A DNA stretch of 64,000 bases from Pocillopora damicornis (lineage: Eukaryota): NCBI RefSeq assembly GCF_003704095.1, contig NW_020845831.1, forward strand, positions 1-64,000. Reading direction: 5' to 3'. Positions 2,358 through 14,800 of the stretch are shown here, one piece after another. Position numbers and translations under genes: made by a program. The first letter of the stretch is position 1. Every line of letters starts with the position of its first letter. Below the pieces are notes generated by a model. That model was given only the letters and a program-made list of their open reading frames with translations, was not told where the DNA came from and did no database searches.

Positions 2358-4694
2358 AAAAAAAAAGAGATATTTGTATAGTTGAACTTTTAATTTGGGT
2401 CAGTGAGGCTGTGAATGAATTCTTTTAGCAGCCGTAGTCAAGGTTATAAAATTATTTCAAGTACAGTAAATAGAAAAAGTGTTATTGCTATATTTTGTGG
2501 TTAGTAATTAACTTGCTTTGGTCAGCAGTCATAATGTTTAAAGTACATGTATATTTTTGTTGCAAGCAGGCTGCTTTGCTGAATTCAATCAAAAGTCTCA
2601 TTATTCCAATGAGAGCTTAATTGCCATGACAGTAGCTCAGTAGACAAACTTGAAGTAATCAATGTTGAAAACTCGATCAGTTATGCTCCCTTCCAAAGGT
2701 GTTATACCATCCTTTCATCCATTTACTTCCCTCTAGCTGATATAAAAAGTACTCAGATACTGATTAATTCTGGTTCTCAAAGGGTTTAAGCCATACTTCA
2801 CTTAGGGGTCACTCATTTGGGGGAACTTTTTCTCTGTCCAACCATTTTCTTGCTTTAGTATGAGTTATCAGGGTCAACATGGCTGTTGTTACTACTGATA
2901 ATATCTTGCATTATCTTCATGTAGGTTAACATTTTGATTCTATAGAGTGAACAGTATTTAATTATCTTCAATTTGTAATACATTGTTAAAGTTCAGATGA
3001 TGAGAATGAGGAAAATTATAAAATATACACAGAAGTTATTGTGTTCATGTAATAACACATAGCCAGTGAAGAATTTTCTGCTTGTTAACCAAGGGAATTA
3101 CTGTCCTCTCAGCTCCCAGAGGTAGTTCTGAAATGTACCATGACAGCTGAAACAGAGCACATTTTCAATTTACACCGTGAAACCACCACCTGGATCTTCC
3201 CTTCAGTGGAATAACCAGGTGCCCCCTTAGAAATATGGGGTTTCCAAAACAGTAGTTAGTTGCCTGTGACACCCTAGTGCTGGTGAAGCACAGCCCAAGA
3301 ATAGGTTCAACAATCACTGTTTAATCCCTTGCACATATATGACCTTGAAAAGTTTGCAGCATTTCTGATGAATGATCTTTAGTTTTTTGTTGGTTACCGT
3401 GTCCTACATATCTTTCTCATCTGCTGCCACTTTAAGAAGTTACATGTATTTAGAGATAAAAATCTGTTATGGTGTAGATTATCTGCAATAGATCTCTTTA
3501 CAACTATGGTGGTGTGAAAGTTGTCCCTTCCCCTCTGTCCATTTTATTTTAATGATTATCAATAAATCAATTTGTTGACCAATATAATTTTTGGTAAATG
3601 GGTTTTATCCTAAGATAGCTGAAGACAGTTTTGGACAAGGGTTTTAAACTGTAAAGAAACTAGGACACTTTGTATCTGTCCATTTGAATTCTTAAAACCT
3701 GGAATAAAGAAATTTAATATCATCAATTCAAACGATTGGTGTGTTGTTATTGTTATACATATCACAATAATGAATAAAAATATAAACCTTGAGATTGCGT
3801 ACTTGAATTTCACCTCTAAGTATTTAATATATTGTTTCTGACTACTGAAGGGTCATTAGGACCTGTACATACAAGAAGTAGGGTTATGAGAAGATTCCCT
3901 CTTGCCTGTATGACTGTACTGTAGTACATTTTCAGAACACTATGTCCAATGCAGAGCTGAAATTTAAGTAAAATATTTTCAAGGAAACAATAAAGTTTCT
4001 GAAGCAACCATCTCTTTCGGTTGGGTACTTGTATCAACCCTACTTCTTGTATTACCATTTTCAGCAGTGTGGAGGTTGAATTGTATTTTAAGAGTGAAGA
4101 AGCTGAGATTCCCCATAAAAGTACTTGAGAGGCAGCTTAGTACGTGAGTAACGGTAGGGGCAACCTGAGGCGTTTACGAACTACCCCCTTCTTCGCGTGC
4201 TTCGGTAGCCGGTCTCTACGGGAAGATAAGTGGAGGGTCAACATATTGGGACGTAGAAAACGTGTACTCTGTAGACTTGAGAAAAAGCAGAAAGTTGAAA
4301 TGGCTTGATTCGATTACAGGGCTTTCACTTATCATGCCAGAATTGGGTGTTGTGCAATAAGATCAGTGTTATTTTACCACCGTGTCTCTTTGCTTTATAG
4401 GCTGGAAACGGCTAAGGAAGAAAAATGTGTTCAGATTTGAAGCCGAGCCCCTGAGAATTTGATAGGGGAAACTTGGGTACACGACTGAGAGCTTCCTATA
4501 GAGTAACAATGAAGGAGGGACCGGGTTGAGGATTTAAGAAGACAAAAACTAATAGTGGCCAGGCAACCAAATTTCCTATAATTCAACATGTTTTTACATC
4601 ATCACTTAAATGCATCAGCTTTAAGCATTTTCTAATTTACGTTCTTTAATTCAAGAAAGATCAAGGACATTTTGCAGGAGTAAAACTATGAAGG

Positions 4695-5444
4695 TTAAGC
4701 ACGATAATTGTCACTATGGCAAACTGTTCCGGTCTCGCTACCGGTCCGTATCATTGTTAAATCTGGTACACTTTGCCGTTTAGTTTCCCTGAAATCATTA
4801 TTAGGGTAAACCATTTCATTTTCGCTATGAGGTTGTTCCGTGGTCTGGTCTGGCACGCTTTCCCACTTAGTTCCTCTTCCATCCGCACAGTTTCTACGAG
4901 ATAGAGGCACTAGGATATGCGCAGTACTTTTTAGCTTTTGAGGGTTGCGGCGGGTCTCGTCATTCTTTAAGGGTGGTGTCACTCTTTGCGCTATGATTTC
5001 TCCGTTTTTCGCCCCCGTCATTTTTTCCGCGCACTCCTTTGTTGAATTCCTGTCATCGAAATCTTCAAGGAACGTATCACCGATTGTGCTATGTGTGACA
5101 GCTCCATCCTTGGACTGATTACCTGTGATATCCTCGTCACCAACCACCGAGCCCGCCAAAGCTTGAGGGCTATCATCTGGAAGGGCAGCAAACGGGACAG
5201 ATTTCCTGGAGACTATGGTATCAAGGCTATCAAATATATCCCATGGATTGCTTTTCGTTGCTTTGAATTGGAAAAATGCTGTTTCGGTCCGTTTTGATGT
5301 GCTTTTTCTACCCTTGCTTGTTTTTCCTTTCGTGCGTTGGTTCAAGAATTCATCATTTTCGCCATTTGACTCTTTGGTGTCAATGGAATGAATATACTTT
5401 GCTTCAGCTGTTCGTCCCGATGAACGTGAAAGAGAAACACCCAT
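4695..5444 (-). CDS. Intronless uncharacterised 249-aa hydrophilic protein with N-terminal myristoylation motif (MGVSLS)
   Basis: 750-nt ORF in AT-rich DNA with ATG start, Gly2 and Ser6. Composition is S/T/K/E/D-rich and disorder-like; CpG-rich upstream region at ~5500-5700. No recognisable domain. Confidence 0.6.
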   Translation of the reverse strand: MGVSLSRSSGRTAEAKYIHSIDTKESNGENDEFLNQRTKGKTSKGRKSTSKRTETAFFQFKATKSNPWDIFDSLDTIVSRKSVPFAALPDDSPQALAGSVVGDEDITGNQSKDGAVTHSTIGDTFLEDFDDRNSTKECAEKMTGAKNGEIIAQRVTPPLKNDETRRNPQKLKSTAHILVPLSRRNCADGRGTKWESVPDQTTEQPHSENEMVYPNNDFRETKRQSVPDLTMIRTGSETGTVCHSDNYRA

Positions 5445-5807
5445 CTCTTAACATGAAAAAACCCTCGCTACTCAGGTTGTGAAAATCTCTGCTAAAAGTC
5501 CTTGCGACTTTGCGTCATAAACACGCAACTCAGTTACGCGAAATGCTACGTAACACTTTCAGCGCGCACAAATCTTTAGGTAGCGGGTGACATTGCTACG
5601 ACACGGCCGCAGCGACTGTTCTCTTCGCGTCACTTCGTCAGATAGGTTCCGAAAAAAATACGATCCTTTATGAGGGGACCAGAGAACGTTTTTCAAAGGG
5701 TGTCCAAGTTTGTTTTGTGCGAGACCATTGTGGTGGAACAATTACTAAGTACAGTAACCGCACCTTTCTATTAATATAAGTTAGGAAGTAGGTTAAGAGT
5801 TTTGGTG

Positions 5808-5964
5808 GGTAATTTAGTGTTAACAACTAAGTTGAAACGTAAATTAGCCACCGTAAAGGGTAGTGGCTGATTTACGTTTTCAACTCAGTTGTTAACACTA
5901 AATTACATGCAATACTCTCCCACCGACGCAGCACCACAGTTTCGTTAGAAACTTACCCCTTTAT
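5808..5964. mobile_element. Short hairpin-forming interspersed element with 15-bp target-site duplication
   Basis: Flanked by identical TTAAGAGTTTTGGTG at 5793-5807 and 5965-5979. Internal inverted arms at ~5809-5851 and ~5863-5906. Related copies at ~10176-10365 and ~28727-28870. Confidence 0.8.
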
Positions 5965-6813
5965 TTAAGAGTTTTGGTGCACTGTCATTCCTTGCCAACA
6001 AATTGTTTTAAAACCAATGTTTTAGGAACCTTAAAACAATTACTTATTGAACAAGTACTCGATTGTTAGATTCGAAATATCAAGTGGATGCTAGTATAGC
6101 CAGCGATGGAAACTCAGTTTCACTGAGAAACTTAGAAAAGCGGGTACATTTGACACCAACAGGTCATTTGAGGGGCCATCTGAGTACTGACAACTCACAA
6201 AAAAGTTCAAATGTTCCGATAGAAAACGAAGAATCCAAACCGAAGAATAACTCGCAATCGTATTATAGCAATTTTATTCGATCTGAAATCAAATTAATAC
6301 GTTCAAAGATTCTACTCACTAAATGCAATCTCATAATTAATAGAAGGAACTACAAAAGCGAAACAAATGCCCGTGAGAGCTAAGAATGGATGTAAGCGAA
6401 CCTATGGGGTTCTTAAAACAAGCCTAATTACAAATGCTTTAAACTCCATTGGGTAACCGAGAAATCTAATCCTAACTTAACAATTCAATAATAATTTTCG
6501 GTTCATTTACTTCTATGGCGAGTTTTCTTAAATTTCCTTGAATACAGCATATATAAATCCGCGCAACAGGTAAGCAGTAAAAATTCTGATCATTTCAGTA
6601 CGACTGTCGGCAAACGGTTGTCAAGTTTGTAGTACACATTGGTTATTATTCTATACTGGCAATCATATAGCCAGAAGTAGTGGATACATTTTACAACTAC
6701 AAGTTAACTTTTAACATAAAAAGGAAAATTTACACCAGTTGATCACCTTAAATAACCTCCTCACTAGAAAGGAAGTGTGACAACTTATATGTAGATTGAT
6801 CACAATTAGTGAG

Positions 6814-9800
6814 TCACTCTGTATCAATGTCCATTGGGGATTGGAATGGCTCCCTGTTTGAGTCCAAATGTGGCCAGGTTGGAAATTGTTGTGGAACCTG
6901 TTGTGCTCTATCATCAGTCATCTCTTGAATCCCTTGAGCTGAAATTAAAGCCTCACCACCAGCCTCTGTAGTTATGACAATGAGATAACAACAACACCTG
7001 GATACTGCAGTGTATAGCAACTCTTTAGCACATCCATTGCTTTCTGAATCATCTTCGTATGGAGGATTATACAAGATGACCACTTTAGATTCAAGGCCCT
7101 TGAAGCACCTAATGCTTTCCACCACAATCTTGTTGTCATTCTTCTCAACTAAGTTGTCTGCAGTTTGGGTTTCAACGCTATTTTTTGAAAGTGCCTGTCT
7201 GAAAGATTTTCTTTCGGCTACTGTTTCAACAAGAATACAAATGTCCCTTTCTTGAACATGTTCTCTACGTAGATCTTTCAAATGAGGAATGATTGTGCTG
7301 GCACCTTTGTCGTCTGAGATCACTTTGCTTTCCAGAGAAGTATCCCATTTGATTGGTAAGCCATATTCTTGATGACCAAGTGTAATGCCATTTTCAGATG
7401 TCATCAATGATTTAAAGTACTTCTCTGACTGCTTGAAAATATTTCCTGTGTTGCGAAGCACTTCCTTGAGCTCTGCACTGTTTTGGAGATATCTAGAGAA
7501 CAATTTAAGCAGCTCTTTAGAGAAGTATAGGTACTGATTTGTGTCATACACGACCCAGAAAAAACCAGTAGGCTTCATCCAATCTTCTAGCTCAGCCTCT
7601 TCATTGAAATTAGGTGTCACAGAGCTCTTGTGCATCAGTTCAAGAAGATCTGGCCACTTACTTCCAAACAAGTCTTGACCTTCATCTACCAAAATGTGGT
7701 CATACTTTCCATAGAAATCTGATGTCTGGGTTGAGAGCAGCTCGAAGGCAAAGCTAACAGCCGCCTCTTTCTCGTTTCTACTTAATGGAATTCGGGGTAA
7801 GCCAGTAACATCAATGATAAGTTTAGAAAATGTTTTAATATCTAAGAAGTTCCTTAACACACTTTTAAGACCAGGACACTTTACTAGTTTGGTTTCAAGC
7901 ACTGACTGTAACTTCTTGCATAACACAGCATTGAAGCATACAATAAGAATATTCTTTTTTTTTATGCTCTAGAATGGAACTTGCCAAAGATTCTGCCTTC
8001 TCCAGCAATAGCATTGTCTTGCCACTTCCAGCGGGTCCCCTAATCCACAATTTGGGAGGATAATGACCAACCAGCAACTCCACTTGTTCTACTGTTTTGA
8101 ACATCAAAGTCTCTTCAACGCGGTTAATGCAATTGTCAAGGAGTGGACTGACATGGACCATGCCAACAAATCTAATTGAAAAAATGTACAAAATGACATT
8201 ATGTTCATGTTAACATGCATGGTCAGACACTTAATGTGCAATTTGTTTTTTATAACCAGTGGCTTGTGCTTGTATCAATGTATGGTATGGTTATAATCAT
8301 TAATGTCTATCACACAATCCTCAATATTAATCAGAGTTCACACATTTAAAGAATTCAAATTTAATGTGCATAAGTACTAACAATTACTATGCTCTCGCAA
8401 ATACCTGTATTTGAGCAAAGTTTGCAAAATATGTTATTTACATTTCTAAAGTTATTTTTTGATTAATCTTTTTTAATCAAAATTTATGATGTCATGACAT
8501 TCCACATTAGCATGAAACAAAAACTTGGATATCTTGGAAACAAAAGAACACACTTTAAAAAATATAAACACCATTTTTGTTTTTTTTTTAAATTCTTTCA
8601 AATAAGAAGCAATTGTTTTGCAATGTCTTTAAGACTAATGGATGGAAAGGTATGAAACCCCAGTGCATGTCAAGAAATCAACATTGTCTAGCCTCTGTGC
8701 TCCATTTTTTTGTCATTGAGAGTAACAGAAAGCGAGCAACATGTAATTTATAATCAAACCATATCTGATAACTGGTGATAACTGGTGTTTTGAGACAATC
8801 ATGCAGCACAAGATAACACCAAATGCTTGTGAAAAAATGCGCCTTCTATATTTTACTTGTTGTCATATTTTATCTTCAGACTAGCATTCTTGAGCAAGGT
8901 GTAGATGCTCTATTCCCCAAAAAACAAGAAGAAACAAGAAAATCCTAAACACAGTTTTTTAGTTCAAAACGTGCAGATCAAGTTCCTATGAAAAACTATA
9001 TTAGGTTTTGATTTAAAGTGTTGTCAAATAAAACTGTCTTTAGTTGTAAAATGTCTCGCATGAAAAAATAAGCTCTGCCAAAACTGTTAAAGTAAGTTAA
9101 CATCCAAAAACAACATTAACATTATTTTATCAATCTTAAAGAAAATGTACACTTTTATAGGGAAAGTGTGAAACAATGGCATGCTATTTCTGTTTGGCTA
9201 AAAGATGTAACAGGTTGGTTAAAATACAGCACTCACCTCATTACCAGGTACTCATAGATGGTTTGATCAATTTCTGAATGTTCTTCACTCACTGGGAACT
9301 TGCCGTACCACCATTCAGAAAATACTTCTGCATTGGTACAGTCCTCTTGATAAAGTACATGGTCCTGTGCACAAAGTGACTGGCCTCACTGAGTATTTGG
9401 CAATACCACAAATGCTGGAAATTTGTCGAATGTTTTGCCCACTTGCTTATTGGATATTATCCCAGCTTCCATCATTTTTTGGCAAAATCTTTCCAAGGAT
9501 ACTTTGTCTTTTTTAATCTGACTGTCAGCTTTATGATGTCCACCTGAAGTTTTTGTTGCTTTTACTTGGAAAAACACAACCCCATGGACATGATGTACTA
9601 TAACAAAGTCATGTTCACCCATTACCCAAGTTGACATCTTAGTACTTGATATCTTACCAGACTGTCACATGGGAATGTACTCACTAAACTTATAGGAATG
9701 AATAACAAACATGGGTTCCTTCTTAATTTCACCAAATTCTTTCAAAATGTCAAAGAAATGTTTTTCTGTAATTTCCCCTAAATTTGGGTTTTTTGCCTTA

Positions 9801-9955
9801 GATATGAAAGAGCGAGGGACCATGTGAGTGCTTTTGGGAGATTTCCAGTCTGGATAGTAATCACATAGGCGGGAACAAATTTCCTCATCTAAATCACGTC
9901 TTCCATTATCTTGCAGATCTTTCTCTCCACAGGATCTCACTGGATTGTGATACAT
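6814..9955 (-). pseudogene. NERD-like PD-(D/E)XK nuclease fused to Schlafen/UvrD-like superfamily-1 helicase; disrupted; coding exons 9955-9237 and 8171-6814
   Basis: Nuclease-like motifs GEITEKHFFDIL and GEHDFVIVHHVHGVVFFQVKA. Helicase motifs GPAGSGKT (Walker A), ILVDEGQD (Walker B), VYDTNQ, LRNT, ESIRCFKGLESKVVIL, LYTAVSRC. Phase-2 GT-AG intron 9236-8172. In-frame TGA at 9667-9665 and 9388-9386; frameshift in the A9 run at 7955-7963. Confidence 0.8.
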
Positions 9956-10177
9956 TTTGAAAACCTATGAAAATTAACAAAAGTCAATATCAGCAAGCTG
10001 AAAAAATATTTAAAATACAGCAAGTAAATATGTGTTGCTGCAACTCCATTCCTAAAAGTGAATTCTGAGTTTTCACAGAAGCAAGTGAAATCTTACAGTG
10101 TAAACATGCACAGTTTTTAAGTGTCATTTTGATAAGGATAACAATAGTTCCCCAGTAATTTGTTTAAAATTAATAAA

Positions 10178-10208
<31 letters not shown>

Positions 10209-10645
10209 TGTCAGTGGGGAGTATAACTAGATAATTTTGGTTTTATCAACTGAATCGATTGTGCAAACTGACCACCCTGAAAAGTATCAAAGCTTTAAAC
10301 CTCTTTACAGTTGCCAATTTACAGTATAATATCAACTAAGTTTAAAAAATCAAATTTATCTTGTTTAAAATTACTTTGCCATGTTTATATTATGTGACTA
10401 AGTTTGTGAGAAAATTTTCTTGACTGAAAAAGTGAAAGAGAAAAACTCTGTTCTCACTGAATCACTTTTAGGGGACACAGGAAGAATTGAGACTGCCACT
10501 AAAATAGGTGTATTGTTATTGACATACATGTCATTATCATTCTCTAAAAGAATTTTCAAAATCAGAGGGTATGGATCATCAGGTCCAGCTGCTTTATGAA
10601 TAAACAATCTGTTCAGCAGTTGATCATTTTTCTCCCAATCTGCAA

Positions 10646-10843
10646 TTAACCCTTTAACTCCCAGAAGTGATTTATATGTAACTTCTCCCAACAATATCCC
10701 TCAAACACATACTGAGATTACTCAAACTCATCAGTTAGAGGTTATCATGATATAACACCAAATTCTGGTAACTAAATTACAAGGAAATGTGTAAAAGCTA
10801 AATGGGAGAATTAACAACCAAATCTTGGGAGTTAAAGGGTTAA
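10646..10843. mobile_element. piggyBac-type MITE (TTAA target duplication)
   Basis: TTAA-CCCTTTAACTCCCA ... TGGGAGTTAAAGGG-TTAA; perfect 14-bp TIR, ~190 bp, no ORF. Confidence 0.85.
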
Positions 10844-11077
10844 GAGGCCAATATTCTGACAACATATTTTATTCTGGTTTGAGGACCATGAAGCAATAAA
10901 AGGGTACTACTTATACTCTTTGGATGGGATGGCAGTAACCATTGTTAAACTTCCTATCCCTATATGGCTTCACATGTAGGTGGTACATAAACTTTGTGTG
11001 TGGGCTGTGTGTAATGCCTGGTATGCTGATGAAACCCCATGAATATTTTCAGTATAAATGTACACGTGTCTATATCC

Positions 11078-11325
11078 TACATTCTCCCTAACATAAAGGG
11101 TGTATCTGAGGTTCTTTGCTGCTGCCTACAACATCAAGGCATATGAACCAATTTTCAAGTTGAACACAACACTTAGATCTCACTTAGTACAACCTAAAGA
11201 CACCCTGGAACCATCGAAACAAGACGGTGTTGTTTACAAGATCCCATGTGAATGCGGCAAAGTGTACAACGGTGAAACTGGGGGATCAATGTGAGAAAGG
11301 ATAAAAGAACATGACAGAGACAACA
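11078..11325 (+). mobile_element. Penelope-like element remnant (end of RT, linker and GIY-YIG endonuclease)
   Basis: Degenerate LPNIKGVSEVL...TTLRSHLVQPKD...QDGVVYKIPCECGKVYNGETG..*ERIKEHD matches the PLE GIY-YIG signature GVVYxIxCxCxxxYxGETxR...RxxEH; contains stops and a frameshift. Confidence 0.85.
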
Positions 11326-11694
11326 CAAAAACACAGCTCAAAATAATTAATGCATCGCTGAAGAGGAAATGTGACATTTATAGAAAACTTGTTTCAGTGC
11401 CCGCCTTATAACTTGAGCCCCATCTAAAAACACAACTATCTCAATTTTCGTATTTTGTAGTCTTTGGTATCCTTTTGAACAAAAAAGGGACCTCCAAACA
11501 CAAATTTCCTTAGAATTATCAGGTTCGCGCGCTTCTGGAAGTTGAGTTTCCTTGAAATTCATCGTCAGAGGAAAAATATTTCCACTCAATTTACCTCTTC
11601 TCTTTCCCTCTTTTTCGATGAAGATGAAGTAGAAACTATTAACCACTTTCTGAGAACATAAATCGCTTGGGTAACTACCGATTACAGTAATTAA

Positions 11695-11885
11695 ACTTAC
11701 TTTTCACAGAGGAACCACCAGGTCCCGACACTTAACTTTCCCGCTTGTTCAACATAAATGGAGAGTTCGCTTGCGCACTTGGAAACGAGGCCAAAATGTG
11801 ACAATTATCCCCAGGCTGCCTCCATGATTCGACATTGGTAAAGGAACGACTAAGTTTAAACTGAAGAATAGATAGATGTCCTAAG
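11695..11885. promoter_or_regulatory. Putative bidirectional promoter and non-coding first exon of the nuclease-helicase gene
   Basis: Minus-strand GTAAGT donor at 11700-11695 can pair with the acceptor at 9966-9965, just upstream of ATG 9955. Plus-strand ATG at 11886 is <200 bp away. CpG-rich patch within CpG-poor DNA. Confidence 0.5.
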
Positions 11886-14800
11886 ATGGGCGAAGAATCG
11901 GTCGATATAAGCGTTATAGAATACTTCAAAACTGGAGAATCACTGGATAAGAAGAAGAAAAGGAAGATTCTTGACTTGTTCAAGTTTTTAGGGGGAGGAG
12001 AAAGCCCTACCGAAGCGGTGGAATTGACCGTCCGTCGAAATTGGAATCTTCGCGAAGCACAGCTGAAGGCCGTATATGAAATGGTAAAGCTTGTTGAAAA
12101 TCCACCAAGCTTGGTAAGTTTTAAGAGGAAAATATTTCCAGATTTTATCTCACTAAGAAGTGATTTATATAATTTACTTTCTTTGCGATACTTGGCGATG
12201 GATTTCAGAGTTCCTGGAAATCTATGATTGTGCGAAATTTAAATATAATCCGATGGAAGGTGCGACCCTCATGAACAACACGAATGTAAACTAACTAAGG
12301 AACGTTTGATCTGTTAGCCTTACTATGCAGTGCTTTTTAAAGATTTATGTCGATTTTCTTCCTTTAGATAGAGCGTGTTTTTATGAAAGTAAGAAAACGC
12401 AAAACTCTTTTTTGTGCCGATCATCCACCAGTAATCTAGATTTAGCCAACGATACATTCATAAGCTTTCAATTGAAGATATTCGAACAGTAAAGAGAAAA
12501 TGTTTTGCGTTCCTTTTGAGATGCAACCAAGACAAATACAGAATGTGGAAACTGAAATGGTGAACCATTGATGTAAGCATGTGTGGTCTCTTCATTTCGA
12601 AAGTTACGTACTGCAAATTGTTTAAATATACATGTATTTGCATGACGAATTACAAGAAATTGGTTTCAGTTTTACAGTGGCTGTGATATTGTTACTATGT
12701 ATAATGTACCCATTCATTGGTATGATTACCTAACTGGAAGAAGAATTTTAAAAGAGTTCACCAAAGGTGACTTTTGTGTGGAATAGCCCTCACATCAAAG
12801 AGCTTGAATAATTATTGAAAGAAGACAAAACAACACAGAATCAGTCTGGTTGTCTGTTTGAACCTTGGAGGATGTAATGGGCATTTTCCATTAATTGAGA
12901 TATCCTAATATCTGACAAGGCTTCAGTATTATAATAAGGTACATTTGTAATTAATTGAGCTCAAGGTTAAATGATGATATTGCTCCTTGCATGTCAAAAG
13001 GGAGTTCATACCTGAATAGTTCAACAATGAAATTTGAGCCGCAATTGCTATGTATAACCATCTGCATCAAAAAGAAACCTTGACAAATAATGCTCTAAAT
13101 TGGCGTGACTACTGTTCTGCACGCAATAGAGAGGTCCATCTTATTCGTAATGCCAAGTGCTCTTTTTACTGAAACTCAACAACAACCTTGAAAATCATAA
13201 AAATCTTTGGTGCATTATTTGTAGTCTTGCACCCTCCAAATGTTCCAAATTACCAAATCATCAACCATTGATGATAAGAACTATCATGATTATTATGATA
13301 TTGCCTACCTTTATAATGAGCACTTTGCCAATATCTTTTCCTTGAGGGCCTTCTATTACTTCCGTTAACACTCAGTTGAATGAAGTTGCTAGAACTGTAT
13401 CTACCTGAGCTGACAATAATCGTCATTCAACACTTCCAAAAGTAAATCTGTACTCCTTACGACTCTGTAGAAATGCAGTACTCTAACCAGCTCAGTGCTC
13501 AATGTCCAGATAGGTGGTAGATATATTGAGCAAGGGGACCATGCCAAGTTGCTTGGTGTAATGATAGATGGTAGCATGTCTTGGGAGCACCATATCAATA
13601 CAATCTGCTGCATGTTTAGCAGTAGGCTTTCTCTTCTCTGTGGTATCAAATCTTATCTCAACTTTGGTTCTGCTTTAAGATTCTATAACTCTTGTGTTAA
13701 CAACTACTTTATTTATTGTTCTGCTGTGTGGGAAAACTGCTTCCACCATCTCTTCTTATGACTCCTGTGTCTTTAGAAGCATGCTGGGTGTATAGGCCTT
13801 GATGCTGACTTCTCTTCGGCTTCTCTTTCTTTATTTCTGAAACTGAAGTGGATCCCCATTTTTGATCTCATTAAATACAGGAAACTTTTTCTTCTTTTCA
13901 GCATTCTCCTTAATACGAACGCTTCTAATTGCCTCAGGAACAGATTTCAGTTTCTTTCTGATTTGCATGGACCTTTGGGCTGTTATACAAGAGCCTCTCT
14001 CTATGACTTAAAAGGTGCTATACCCACATGGTAACTCTGGGAAATGCACACTTGCCTATAGTACTACTAAACTCATCAATGAACTCAGTTCTGACCTAAA
14101 AGAGTTCTCTACTTCTTCCTCTCTGTTGACATTCAAATTTCTTCCCTCCTCTCTCAAATCTAAATTACGAAATCTATTTCTCTCACATCTATCCTCTTCT
14201 GAGCATTTAGAGGATCTACTGTGTTCAATTTGCTGCTATTGTATTCATTGTTAATGTTCTTCATAATGCCAACCACAACCCCTGTTGAGTATTTTGTACA
14301 TATTTCACTCTCTTTTATCAATTTATATATTACAATTACGTGTTTTTAAGTTTTTAGTCAATTTAGATTTTAGAATTTTATTGCGTGTTATAGTTTATTC
14401 TACTTTAGATATCATTTCTCTTGTATGTATATTAAAATTTATTTTTGAGGGCTGTACGTTAGGAAACTAATAGGTTATTGCATTGCCCTTATTCATTCAT
14501 CATTCATTATCCAAGGGGAATCTGGGGGCATTTAATTTTTAGCATTCTTGGCTTTGAAAGGAGTACCAATCATAATAATTTTTATCAACCACAAAATTTT
14601 TTTTTTTGAACAAAAAGTTTTTCCTTAGATACTGTAGGCAGAATTGCACTTTGAATACCTTCCCAGCCTCTTATCTATTTTGTAACTCTCAGAAAATTTT
14701 GAAGCTCACGGTTTGTAATATACTTATTAAATGATCATTAATGAACAGCTAATAGGAAAAGAAGAGCAATCGGTTAGATTTTATGGGTATCCATGACACT

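Follow-up and report, generated by a model that had tools for sequence, protein, structure and literature searches.

A transcribed coral pseudogene points to an uncharacterised animal family of NERD-helicase fusions

The window analysed here is a stretch of 64,000 nucleotides of the coral Pocillopora damicornis (assembly GCF_003704095.1, contig NW_020845831.1, positions 1 to 64,000). On its minus strand a gene runs from an ATG at 9955-9953 to a stop at 6816-6814. A sequence-only reading, made without database searches, had described this gene as encoding a NERD-like nuclease fused to a superfamily 1 (SF1) helicase, and the features on which it relied (the start, the NERD motifs, the intron, the helicase motifs and three lesions) were all located where it had placed them. 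Positions 6814-9964, together with a 5' untranslated exon at about 11701-11743, form a single-copy nuclear gene that is transcribed and correctly spliced, and the window copy of this gene is a transcribed pseudogene, of which there is hardly any doubt. Taken as a whole, the locus is very probably best explained as the inactivated copy of an ancient, fast-evolving animal family of NERD-helicases, in which copy number varies between lineages and null alleles recur. The features of the gene are as follows.

9237-9964, minus strand: coding exon 1, with the ATG at 9955-9953 and the NERD domain of PD-(D/E)xK type
9778-9764, minus strand: GEITE motif in exon 1
9619-9605, minus strand: GEHDF motif in exon 1
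9574-9560, minus strand: FFQVK motif in exon 1
9520-9506, minus strand: QIKKD motif in exon 1
8172-9236, minus strand: phase-2 GT-AG intron of 1065 nucleotides within the Arg codon of ...LVMR/FVG..., skipped exactly by the RNA contigs
6814-8171, minus strand: coding exon 2, SF1 helicase, with the stop at 6816-6814
8038-8015, minus strand: Walker A motif GPAGSGKT in exon 2
7686-7672, minus strand: DEGQD motif in exon 2
7548-7534, minus strand: YDTNQ motif in exon 2
7461-7447, minus strand: VLRNT motif in exon 2
7125-7078, minus strand: motif V region, of SIRCFKGLES type, in exon 2
7020-6994, minus strand: LLYTAVSRC motif in exon 2
11701-11743, minus strand: 5' untranslated exon, minimum extent (at least 43 nucleotides), with the donor GTAAGT at 11700-11695, from RNA contigs X15 and X17
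9965-11700, minus strand: 5' intron of 1736 nucleotides, with the acceptor AG at 9966-9965, a copy of a repeat of about 125 nucleotides and putative transposon-derived fragments of open reading frames

In poly(A) RNA contigs of X15 and X17, which are runs of two studies, position 9237 is followed directly by position 8171, so that the clean phase-2 intron proposed from the sequence is the one removed in the transcripts. The donor GT (9236-9235) follows 239 codons and the AG of the split Arg codon, and the acceptor AG (8173-8172) restores the frame. Past position 9964 the contigs of X15 and X17 continue for 43 and 30 letters, respectively, and match the window at 11701-11730 with one mismatch. 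The 5' untranslated exon found in this way is a feature absent from the sequence-only reading.

A functional gene should keep an uninterrupted frame across its spliced exons; here that frame is broken by two in-frame TGA codons and one frameshift.

9665-9667, minus strand: lesion 1, in-frame TGA; TGG (Trp) in the intact haplotype
9386-9388, minus strand: lesion 2, in-frame TGA at codon 189; CGA (Arg) in the intact haplotype, with the stop also present in L017
7957-7965, minus strand: lesion 3, frameshift in a run of nine T at exon-2 codon 72; net deletion of 2 nucleotides relative to the intact haplotype

The three lesions noted from the letters alone are seen in both DNA and RNA contigs. The letters of lesion 1 and the run length of lesion 3 are the same as in the window in the DNA runs X1 and X2 and in the RNA run X15. 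The X15 contigs, which cover both exons, and the X1 contigs are identical to the window; these two runs come from the same sample, possibly the source of the assembly, and are not independent of it. The DNA run X2, from a different study, carries both stops and the same homopolymer length and thus supports the lesions independently. The RNA of X17 represents an open allele: it has a C at 9665, giving TGG, a CGA at the second stop site, and at lesion 3 a TT insertion with two substitutions that keeps the frame open. If the window copy were functional, the lesions would have to be errors of assembly or sequencing, or rare somatic variants. One of them does lie in a nine-base homopolymer, a classic site of error, and every residue that is invariant in the family is retained in the window copy, but the recovery of both stops and of the run length in a second study, the identity of the poly(A) RNA contigs to the window over both exons and the presence of the codon-189 stop in an independent haplotype (L017) make this explanation extremely improbable. 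Since all family-invariant residues are still present, the inactivation is recent. The sequence-only reading of this gene as one that encodes a nuclease-helicase therefore does not hold for the copy in the window, which makes no full-length protein. It could yield an N-terminal fragment of 96 amino acids at most, and nonsense-mediated decay is expected to act on its mRNA.

The same locus was recovered from TARA (Tara Pacific) coral-metagenome scaffolds, to which the closest sequences belong. Three of them (L010, L011 and L012) are intact, with 239 amino acids encoded by exon 1 and 449 by exon 2. Three others (L013-L015) have a single TAG at exon-2 codon 182, and L016 has a 2-nucleotide deletion, a 28-nucleotide deletion and a 299-nucleotide insertion; L017 carries, of the window lesions, the codon-189 TGA only. 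At this locus, then, the intact haplotype is accompanied by null haplotypes that arose independently and number at least four; as a pseudogene, the window copy is either unitary or segregating.

For the domain analysis, the window copy was searched as five separate open pieces, and the intact form was taken from the orthologous exons of L010 and from full-length relatives. At the N-terminus, the pattern GExDF(8-20 residues)h-x-(E/Q)VK is common to the animal members and to bacterial proteins of about 560 amino acids, and the latter match Pfam NERD at 1e-12 to 8e-14. When the N-termini of animal and bacterial NERD-helicases were aligned with hhalign, the probability was 98% (E 2.1e-13, 145 columns), and the alignment took in an upstream AE..VY..L helix, which is the GE-x-x-E helix singled out in the sequence-only reading. 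A hidden Markov model of the bacterial N-termini matched the animal N-termini with E values from 1.8e-10 to 5e-3, scaled to a nominal one-million-sequence database. The Pfam NERD profile (PF08378) has a gathering cut-off of 22.1 bits, which is exceeded within this animal clade by amphioxus, octocoral and annelid members (P0153, 26.2 bits; P0178, 26.3; P0180, 23.5; P0170, 23.9). No Pfam NERD match at E <= 0.01 was obtained in the window pieces or in the coral full-length members. For the intact orthologous exon 1, an AlphaFold2 model (predicted local distance difference test score, pLDDT, 77) places the candidate catalytic residues in the order helix (E63), strand, strand (D115), strand (Q129, K131), helix, so that the N-terminus is predicted to have the canonical order of the restriction-endonuclease fold. 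The lack of such a fold, which the sequence-only reading had listed among its possible refutations, is thus not what the evidence shows; the Foldseek search with the NERD-only model returned no match at E <= 0.001.

Among 18 animal sequences, E63, D115, K131 and Q145 are invariant. Position 129 alternates solely between E and Q across the family: it is Q in the window copy and in most animal members, and E in the amphioxus paralogue P0153 and in two paralogues of the P. damicornis genome (C2502 and C4052). The QxK noticed in place of the usual ExK is therefore a conserved family variant and not a sign of decay. Such a QxK is tolerated in some PD-(D/E)xK families, for example Mrr. The intact form is in all likelihood a protein of about 690 amino acids with an N-terminal NERD domain, that is, a PD-(D/E)xK nuclease of restriction-endonuclease fold with an E...D...QxK signature. 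By analogy, we consider it somewhat probable that the NERD domain of the intact members is a catalytically active nuclease. Several observations speak against this account of the protein: the Pfam search of the five window pieces gave sub-threshold matches only (Cap4_nuclease, 0.02; UvrD_C_2, 3e-4), the amphioxus member P0152 has lost the Lys of the signature, and the Q for E lies at the metal-binding position, where it may abolish catalysis. The animal NERD could instead be a non-catalytic domain, binding nucleic acid or regulatory, in proteins acting as helicase-type sensors or adaptors, comparable to the apparently inert linker of the Schlafens. Such a domain sits poorly with the invariance of the four residues and with an alternation at position 129 that is confined to E and Q, as would be expected if the active site were working, and we regard it as rather unlikely.

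The helicase part of the gene is of SF1, DUF2075 or Schlafen-group-III type. Exon 2 of the window copy holds GPAGSGKT, DEGQD, YDTNQ, VLRNT, the SIRCFKGLES region and YTAVSR in this order, the full motif set that the sequence-only reading had recognised. When the family profile was compared with solved structures, SLFN11 came first (1.4e-17), followed by SLFN5 and SLFN14, all ahead of PcrA (4e-9) and GajB, and SLFN11 was also the top Foldseek match (7e-18) of the full-length model (pLDDT 80). A profile of the bacterial NERD-helicases ranked SLFN11 first as well (1.2e-23), so that the likeness to Schlafens belongs to the whole NERD-helicase group and indicates no special link with the animal family. 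The proposed analogy with the Schlafens stands for the helicase, for which SLFN11, SLFN5 and SLFN14 are the closest solved structures; the protein as a whole is not a Schlafen. No match to SLFN_AlbA_2, the Schlafen core ribonuclease, was found in any window piece or family member. In contrast to the group III Schlafens (human SLFN11, SLFN5 and SLFN14), the family is without the AlbA_2 core and, at the sequence level, without the SWAVDL linker, and its nuclease is a PD-(D/E)xK NERD domain where theirs is a Schlafen ribonuclease. Compared with the SF1A helicases UvrD, PcrA and Rep and with GajB of the Gabija system, it is without the large 1B/2B inserts (some 310-345 residues were aligned of about 640 in UvrD) and has a fused nuclease, and these helicases score below SLFN11 at the sequence level.

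The same genome also has a separate, true group-III-type Schlafen-like gene (L009, G000:C3883:1885000-1894999), with SLFN_AlbA_2 (8.8e-10), the SLFN_GTPase-like linker (1.5e-16) and an SF1 helicase encoded in exons at about 2195-2677, 4579-5424, 5754-6056 and 6225-6932 of that locus. The exon-2 piece of the window gives a weak match to its helicase (E 4.4e-4, 27% identity). Derivation of the Schlafen linker from NERD was tried as a sequence match and found no support at that level: hhalign of the family alignment against the linker exon of the coral Schlafen aligned the Walker A region only.

The nearest non-animal sequences to the animal family are the bacterial NERD-helicases, represented in PADLOC by RTasNERD-Hel (PDLC03813) and NERD+UvrD (C3a187). 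They have the same domain order as the animal family and share with it the GExDF...(E/Q)VK core and the helicase subtype. The exon-2 piece of the window matched these two profiles at 7.9e-13 and 2.3e-11, respectively. Full-length relatives match the NERD-helicase profiles end to end; P0150 did so at 5.8e-31 (profile positions 5-514 of 519) and P0087 at 3.1e-20 (positions 49-509). The architecture first read from the letters, a NERD-type PD-(D/E)xK nuclease followed by an SF1 helicase in the bacterial order, is supported. The bacterial proteins adjoin the UG34 defence reverse transcriptases (PMC9226505) and also occur beside the type I-G Tiamat system (preprint). The animal members differ from them in an extra conserved N-terminal segment (YPDW...MVP), in having mostly Q for E, in their spliceosomal introns, in the lack of operon partners and in forming a separate clade; they also have lineage-specific additions that the bacterial proteins do not share, namely a C-terminal extension in corals and CARD plus TRADD-N in one amphioxus model. 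Two other single-chain defence proteins that combine a nuclease with an SF1 helicase, Nhi (nuclease-helicase immunity) and AbiO, gave weak PADLOC matches to the helicase part; for the animal members these matches are marginal (E 1e-2 to 6e-6, over short stretches), and membership in either group is unsupported.

Exon 2 by itself gave matches far above what chance would produce: an orthologue was hit with E 1.9e-221, and 37 proteins reached E <= 1e-30. An exhaustive HMMER scan returned 140 representatives at E <= 0.001, of which the strong matches were animal and the weak ones bacterial NERD-helicases, among them one from Thermomicrobium annotated as a "NERD domain-containing protein". The named animal members are all annotated as uncharacterised and come from the stony corals Stylophora, Acropora and Oculina, the octocoral Dendronephthya, the annelid Owenia, the ostracod Darwinula, the hemichordate Saccoglossus and three species of Branchiostoma with at least five paralogues; the nearest to the window gene are those of Stylophora and other stony corals. 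The searches made gave no named matches in vertebrates, insects or nematodes. In a tree of 96 helicase sequences, the animal-type sequences lie on one side of a branch (Shimodaira-Hasegawa-like approximate likelihood-ratio test, SH-aLRT, 99) that separates them from the bacterial ones, and the orthologue of the window gene falls in a coral-only subclade, apart from the subclade of the paralogue in the same genome. The window gene, this C2502 paralogue and a homologue of Branchiostoma lanceolatum have the identical phase-2 intron, inside the Arg codon that precedes FVG. The shared position implies that the gene was present in the common ancestor of cnidarians and bilaterians and rules out a recent transfer. 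Of the horizontal origin that had been suggested, the recent form is thus discarded, and any transfer predates the cnidarian-bilaterian split. We conclude with good confidence that the family is an uncharacterised animal clade of NERD-helicase fusions, in animals since before that split. Full-text literature searches, which did not reach most subscription journals, gave no description of animal NERD-helicases. This kind of protein is known from bacteria; the animal clade is what is new.

The P. damicornis genome was searched for copies over 234.35 Mb in 4393 contigs. It holds one copy of the window gene, one intact paralogue that is 39% identical and one divergent, intronless relative of 953 amino acids. 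The intact paralogue (L007, G000:C2502) is encoded at 3933-4424, 5337-5690 and 6345-7793, its identity of 39% being that in the helicase; it has the canonical FFE/VK, with the motif split by an extra intron, and a reverse-transcriptase fragment about 1.5 kb upstream. The open reading frame of 953 amino acids (L008, positions 4612-7470, minus strand; G000:C4052 at about 202611-205469) resembles NERD at its N-terminus (GESDF...LLEVK), with a Pfam NERD score of 18.9 bits that falls short of the cut-off, and also has an insert of some 250 amino acids and a divergent SF1 helicase (GGPGSGKT). Its branch in the tree is very long, and it could have arisen by retrocopying or be a divergent paralogue of long standing. 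A stand-alone NERD open reading frame (L019, G000:C1899:849178-849561; 352-amino-acid open frame, Pfam NERD 66.5 bits) stands far nearer to the bacterial consensus than do the helicase-fused members. In the coral paralogue clades, P0028, P0034, P0080, P0103, P0254 and P0255 have after the helicase a conserved C-terminal extension of about 200 amino acids, with the pattern ...LLEPGD...IRN...IEY.VY..RR...Y...LK.EI..., which has no Pfam match at E <= 0.01 and is absent from the window gene. The ostracod protein P0155 (Darwinula stevensoni, 1947 amino acids) contains three tandem NERD-helicase units in one gene model, which probably reflects an array of neighbouring genes that annotation has fused into one.

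The surroundings of the coding exons raise the question of whether the gene is the cargo of a transposon or of an integrated virus, or else a recent bacterial transfer or contaminant. An inverted repeat of 47 nucleotides (5919-5965 and 10172-10218, 94% complementary) brackets the coding exons, fragments resembling transposon open reading frames lie within the 5' intron, and the closest non-animal relatives are bacterial. The repeat arms are, however, two copies of an element of about 125 nucleotides for which a first look gave at least 1530 candidates in the genome, and the transcription unit reaches past one of the arms, to 11701 and beyond. The gene is single-copy, with syntenic flanks that are 99% identical in other coral samples, its spliceosomal introns are confirmed by RNA, one of them being common to amphioxus, and the animal members form one clade. 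Neither many near-identical copies with the same termini nor target-site duplications at 5919 and 10218 were seen. The reading as transposon cargo, which had been named as a way in which the sequence-only reading could fail, was rejected on the count of the bracketing repeat and the extent of the transcript; for the transferred or carried gene in any of these forms, the chance is very slight.

The two copies of the 125-nucleotide repeat are oppositely oriented and lie at about 10167-10300 and at 5919-5965 of the window, with read depth rising about 1000-fold at 10167. The fragments in the 5' intron (10398-10694 on the minus strand and 11100-11294 on the plus strand) have a transposon-derived look as judged by eye, one with a reverse-transcriptase-like "AAGPD" and the other with a GIY-YIG-like "CECGKVYNGETG".

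The window and the intact haplotype are 93.9% identical over exon 1 and 95.4% over exon 2; for the intron the figure is 97.1% and for the flanks 98.7-99.1%, and in each of five haplotypes the exons were more divergent than the intron. The pairwise ratios of nonsynonymous to synonymous substitution (dN/dS) were 0.7-2.4, and the nonsynonymous divergence per site exceeded that of the intron (Fisher p 0.0007-0.04, for pairs that are not independent). Such a pattern is consistent with recurrent loss of function combined with either diversifying selection or allelic lineages of great depth. The family could also be a housekeeping nuclease-helicase of repair, recombination or replication (Dna2-, AddAB- or HelD-like), with the window copy as a decaying redundant duplicate. 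Against such a role stand the patchy distribution, with named matches in few marine invertebrate groups, the lineage-specific copy number (at least five in amphioxus, several clades in corals), the loss-of-function haplotypes, at least four and independent, at a single locus, the excess of amino-acid over intron divergence and the fact that the best bacterial profile matches are NERD-helicase models of PADLOC, a library of anti-phage defence. The family is thus multi-copy, patchy and fast-evolving, where the sequence-only reading had offered single-copy, slowly evolving housekeeping homologues as grounds for its own rejection, and a housekeeping role appears improbable.

In the intact members, we propose that the helicase would load onto and translocate along nucleic acid, likely foreign or aberrant DNA or single-stranded DNA, and would feed it to the NERD nuclease, or license that nuclease, for cleavage. 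This proposal is made because of the analogy with the bacterial NERD-helicases and with SLFN11, which is reported to be a single-stranded DNA sensor and restriction factor (PMC11615386, PMC9482658). In amphioxus, one predicted isoform joins the module to CARD and TRADD-N adaptors, which may link sensing to death or immune signalling. This is P0152 of Branchiostoma lanceolatum, named "DEDD", in which CARD and TRADD-N lie upstream of the NERD-helicase module; TRADD-N-linked nucleic-acid enzymes are expanded in marine invertebrates, and the fusion, if true, would fit these expansions (PMC8195603).

We are marginally inclined to favour an immune or conflict role for the family, and several points count against it and against the evolutionary reading attached to it. 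The role is argued from analogy, one predicted CARD/TRADD-N fusion and the evolutionary pattern. P0152 is a predicted gene model that spans 21.6 kb, its introns measuring about 10 kb and 3 kb, and may be two genes merged. Plain relaxed constraint would also account for a dN/dS near 1 in a set of haplotypes most of which are broken, and these haplotypes are metagenome contigs, possibly mixtures of species or chimeras. A wider model, which we put forward tentatively and hold to be possible at best, is that the animal NERD-helicases are an ancient eumetazoan nucleic-acid immune module of bacterial NERD-helicase descent, in which an arms race or balancing selection maintains intact alleles beside null ones in corals, and that the C-terminal half of the group III Schlafens (linker and helicase) comes from the same module, the linker being a degenerate NERD domain of restriction-endonuclease fold.

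To our knowledge, the NERD-helicase fusions described so far are all parts of bacterial defence islands and have received little study. Their animal clade is a candidate addition to the immune modules common to bacteria and animals, and gives the group III Schlafen helicase a concrete non-Schlafen relative in animals. The coral locus, with an intact and several independently broken haplotypes, offers a natural experiment on whether this gene is subject to balancing or fluctuating selection in reef corals. As for the copy in the window, it is an ordinary, well documented transcribed pseudogene, and the interest lies in the family.

The transcript of the window gene starts less than about 150 nucleotides from the ATG (11886) of a divergent neighbour on the plus strand, an ARM-TPR-MYND gene, and this head-to-head arrangement is the sole neighbour relation seen. 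In its minimum extent, the 5' untranslated exon is at a distance of about 140 nucleotides from that ATG. An Rfam search of window positions 6000-12500 gave no match. About 1.4 kb downstream of the window gene and on the same strand, an open reading frame at 4695-5444 (minus strand) encodes 249 amino acids rich in Ser, Thr and Lys; it has no Pfam match and is predicted as a gene in every TARA scaffold of the locus.

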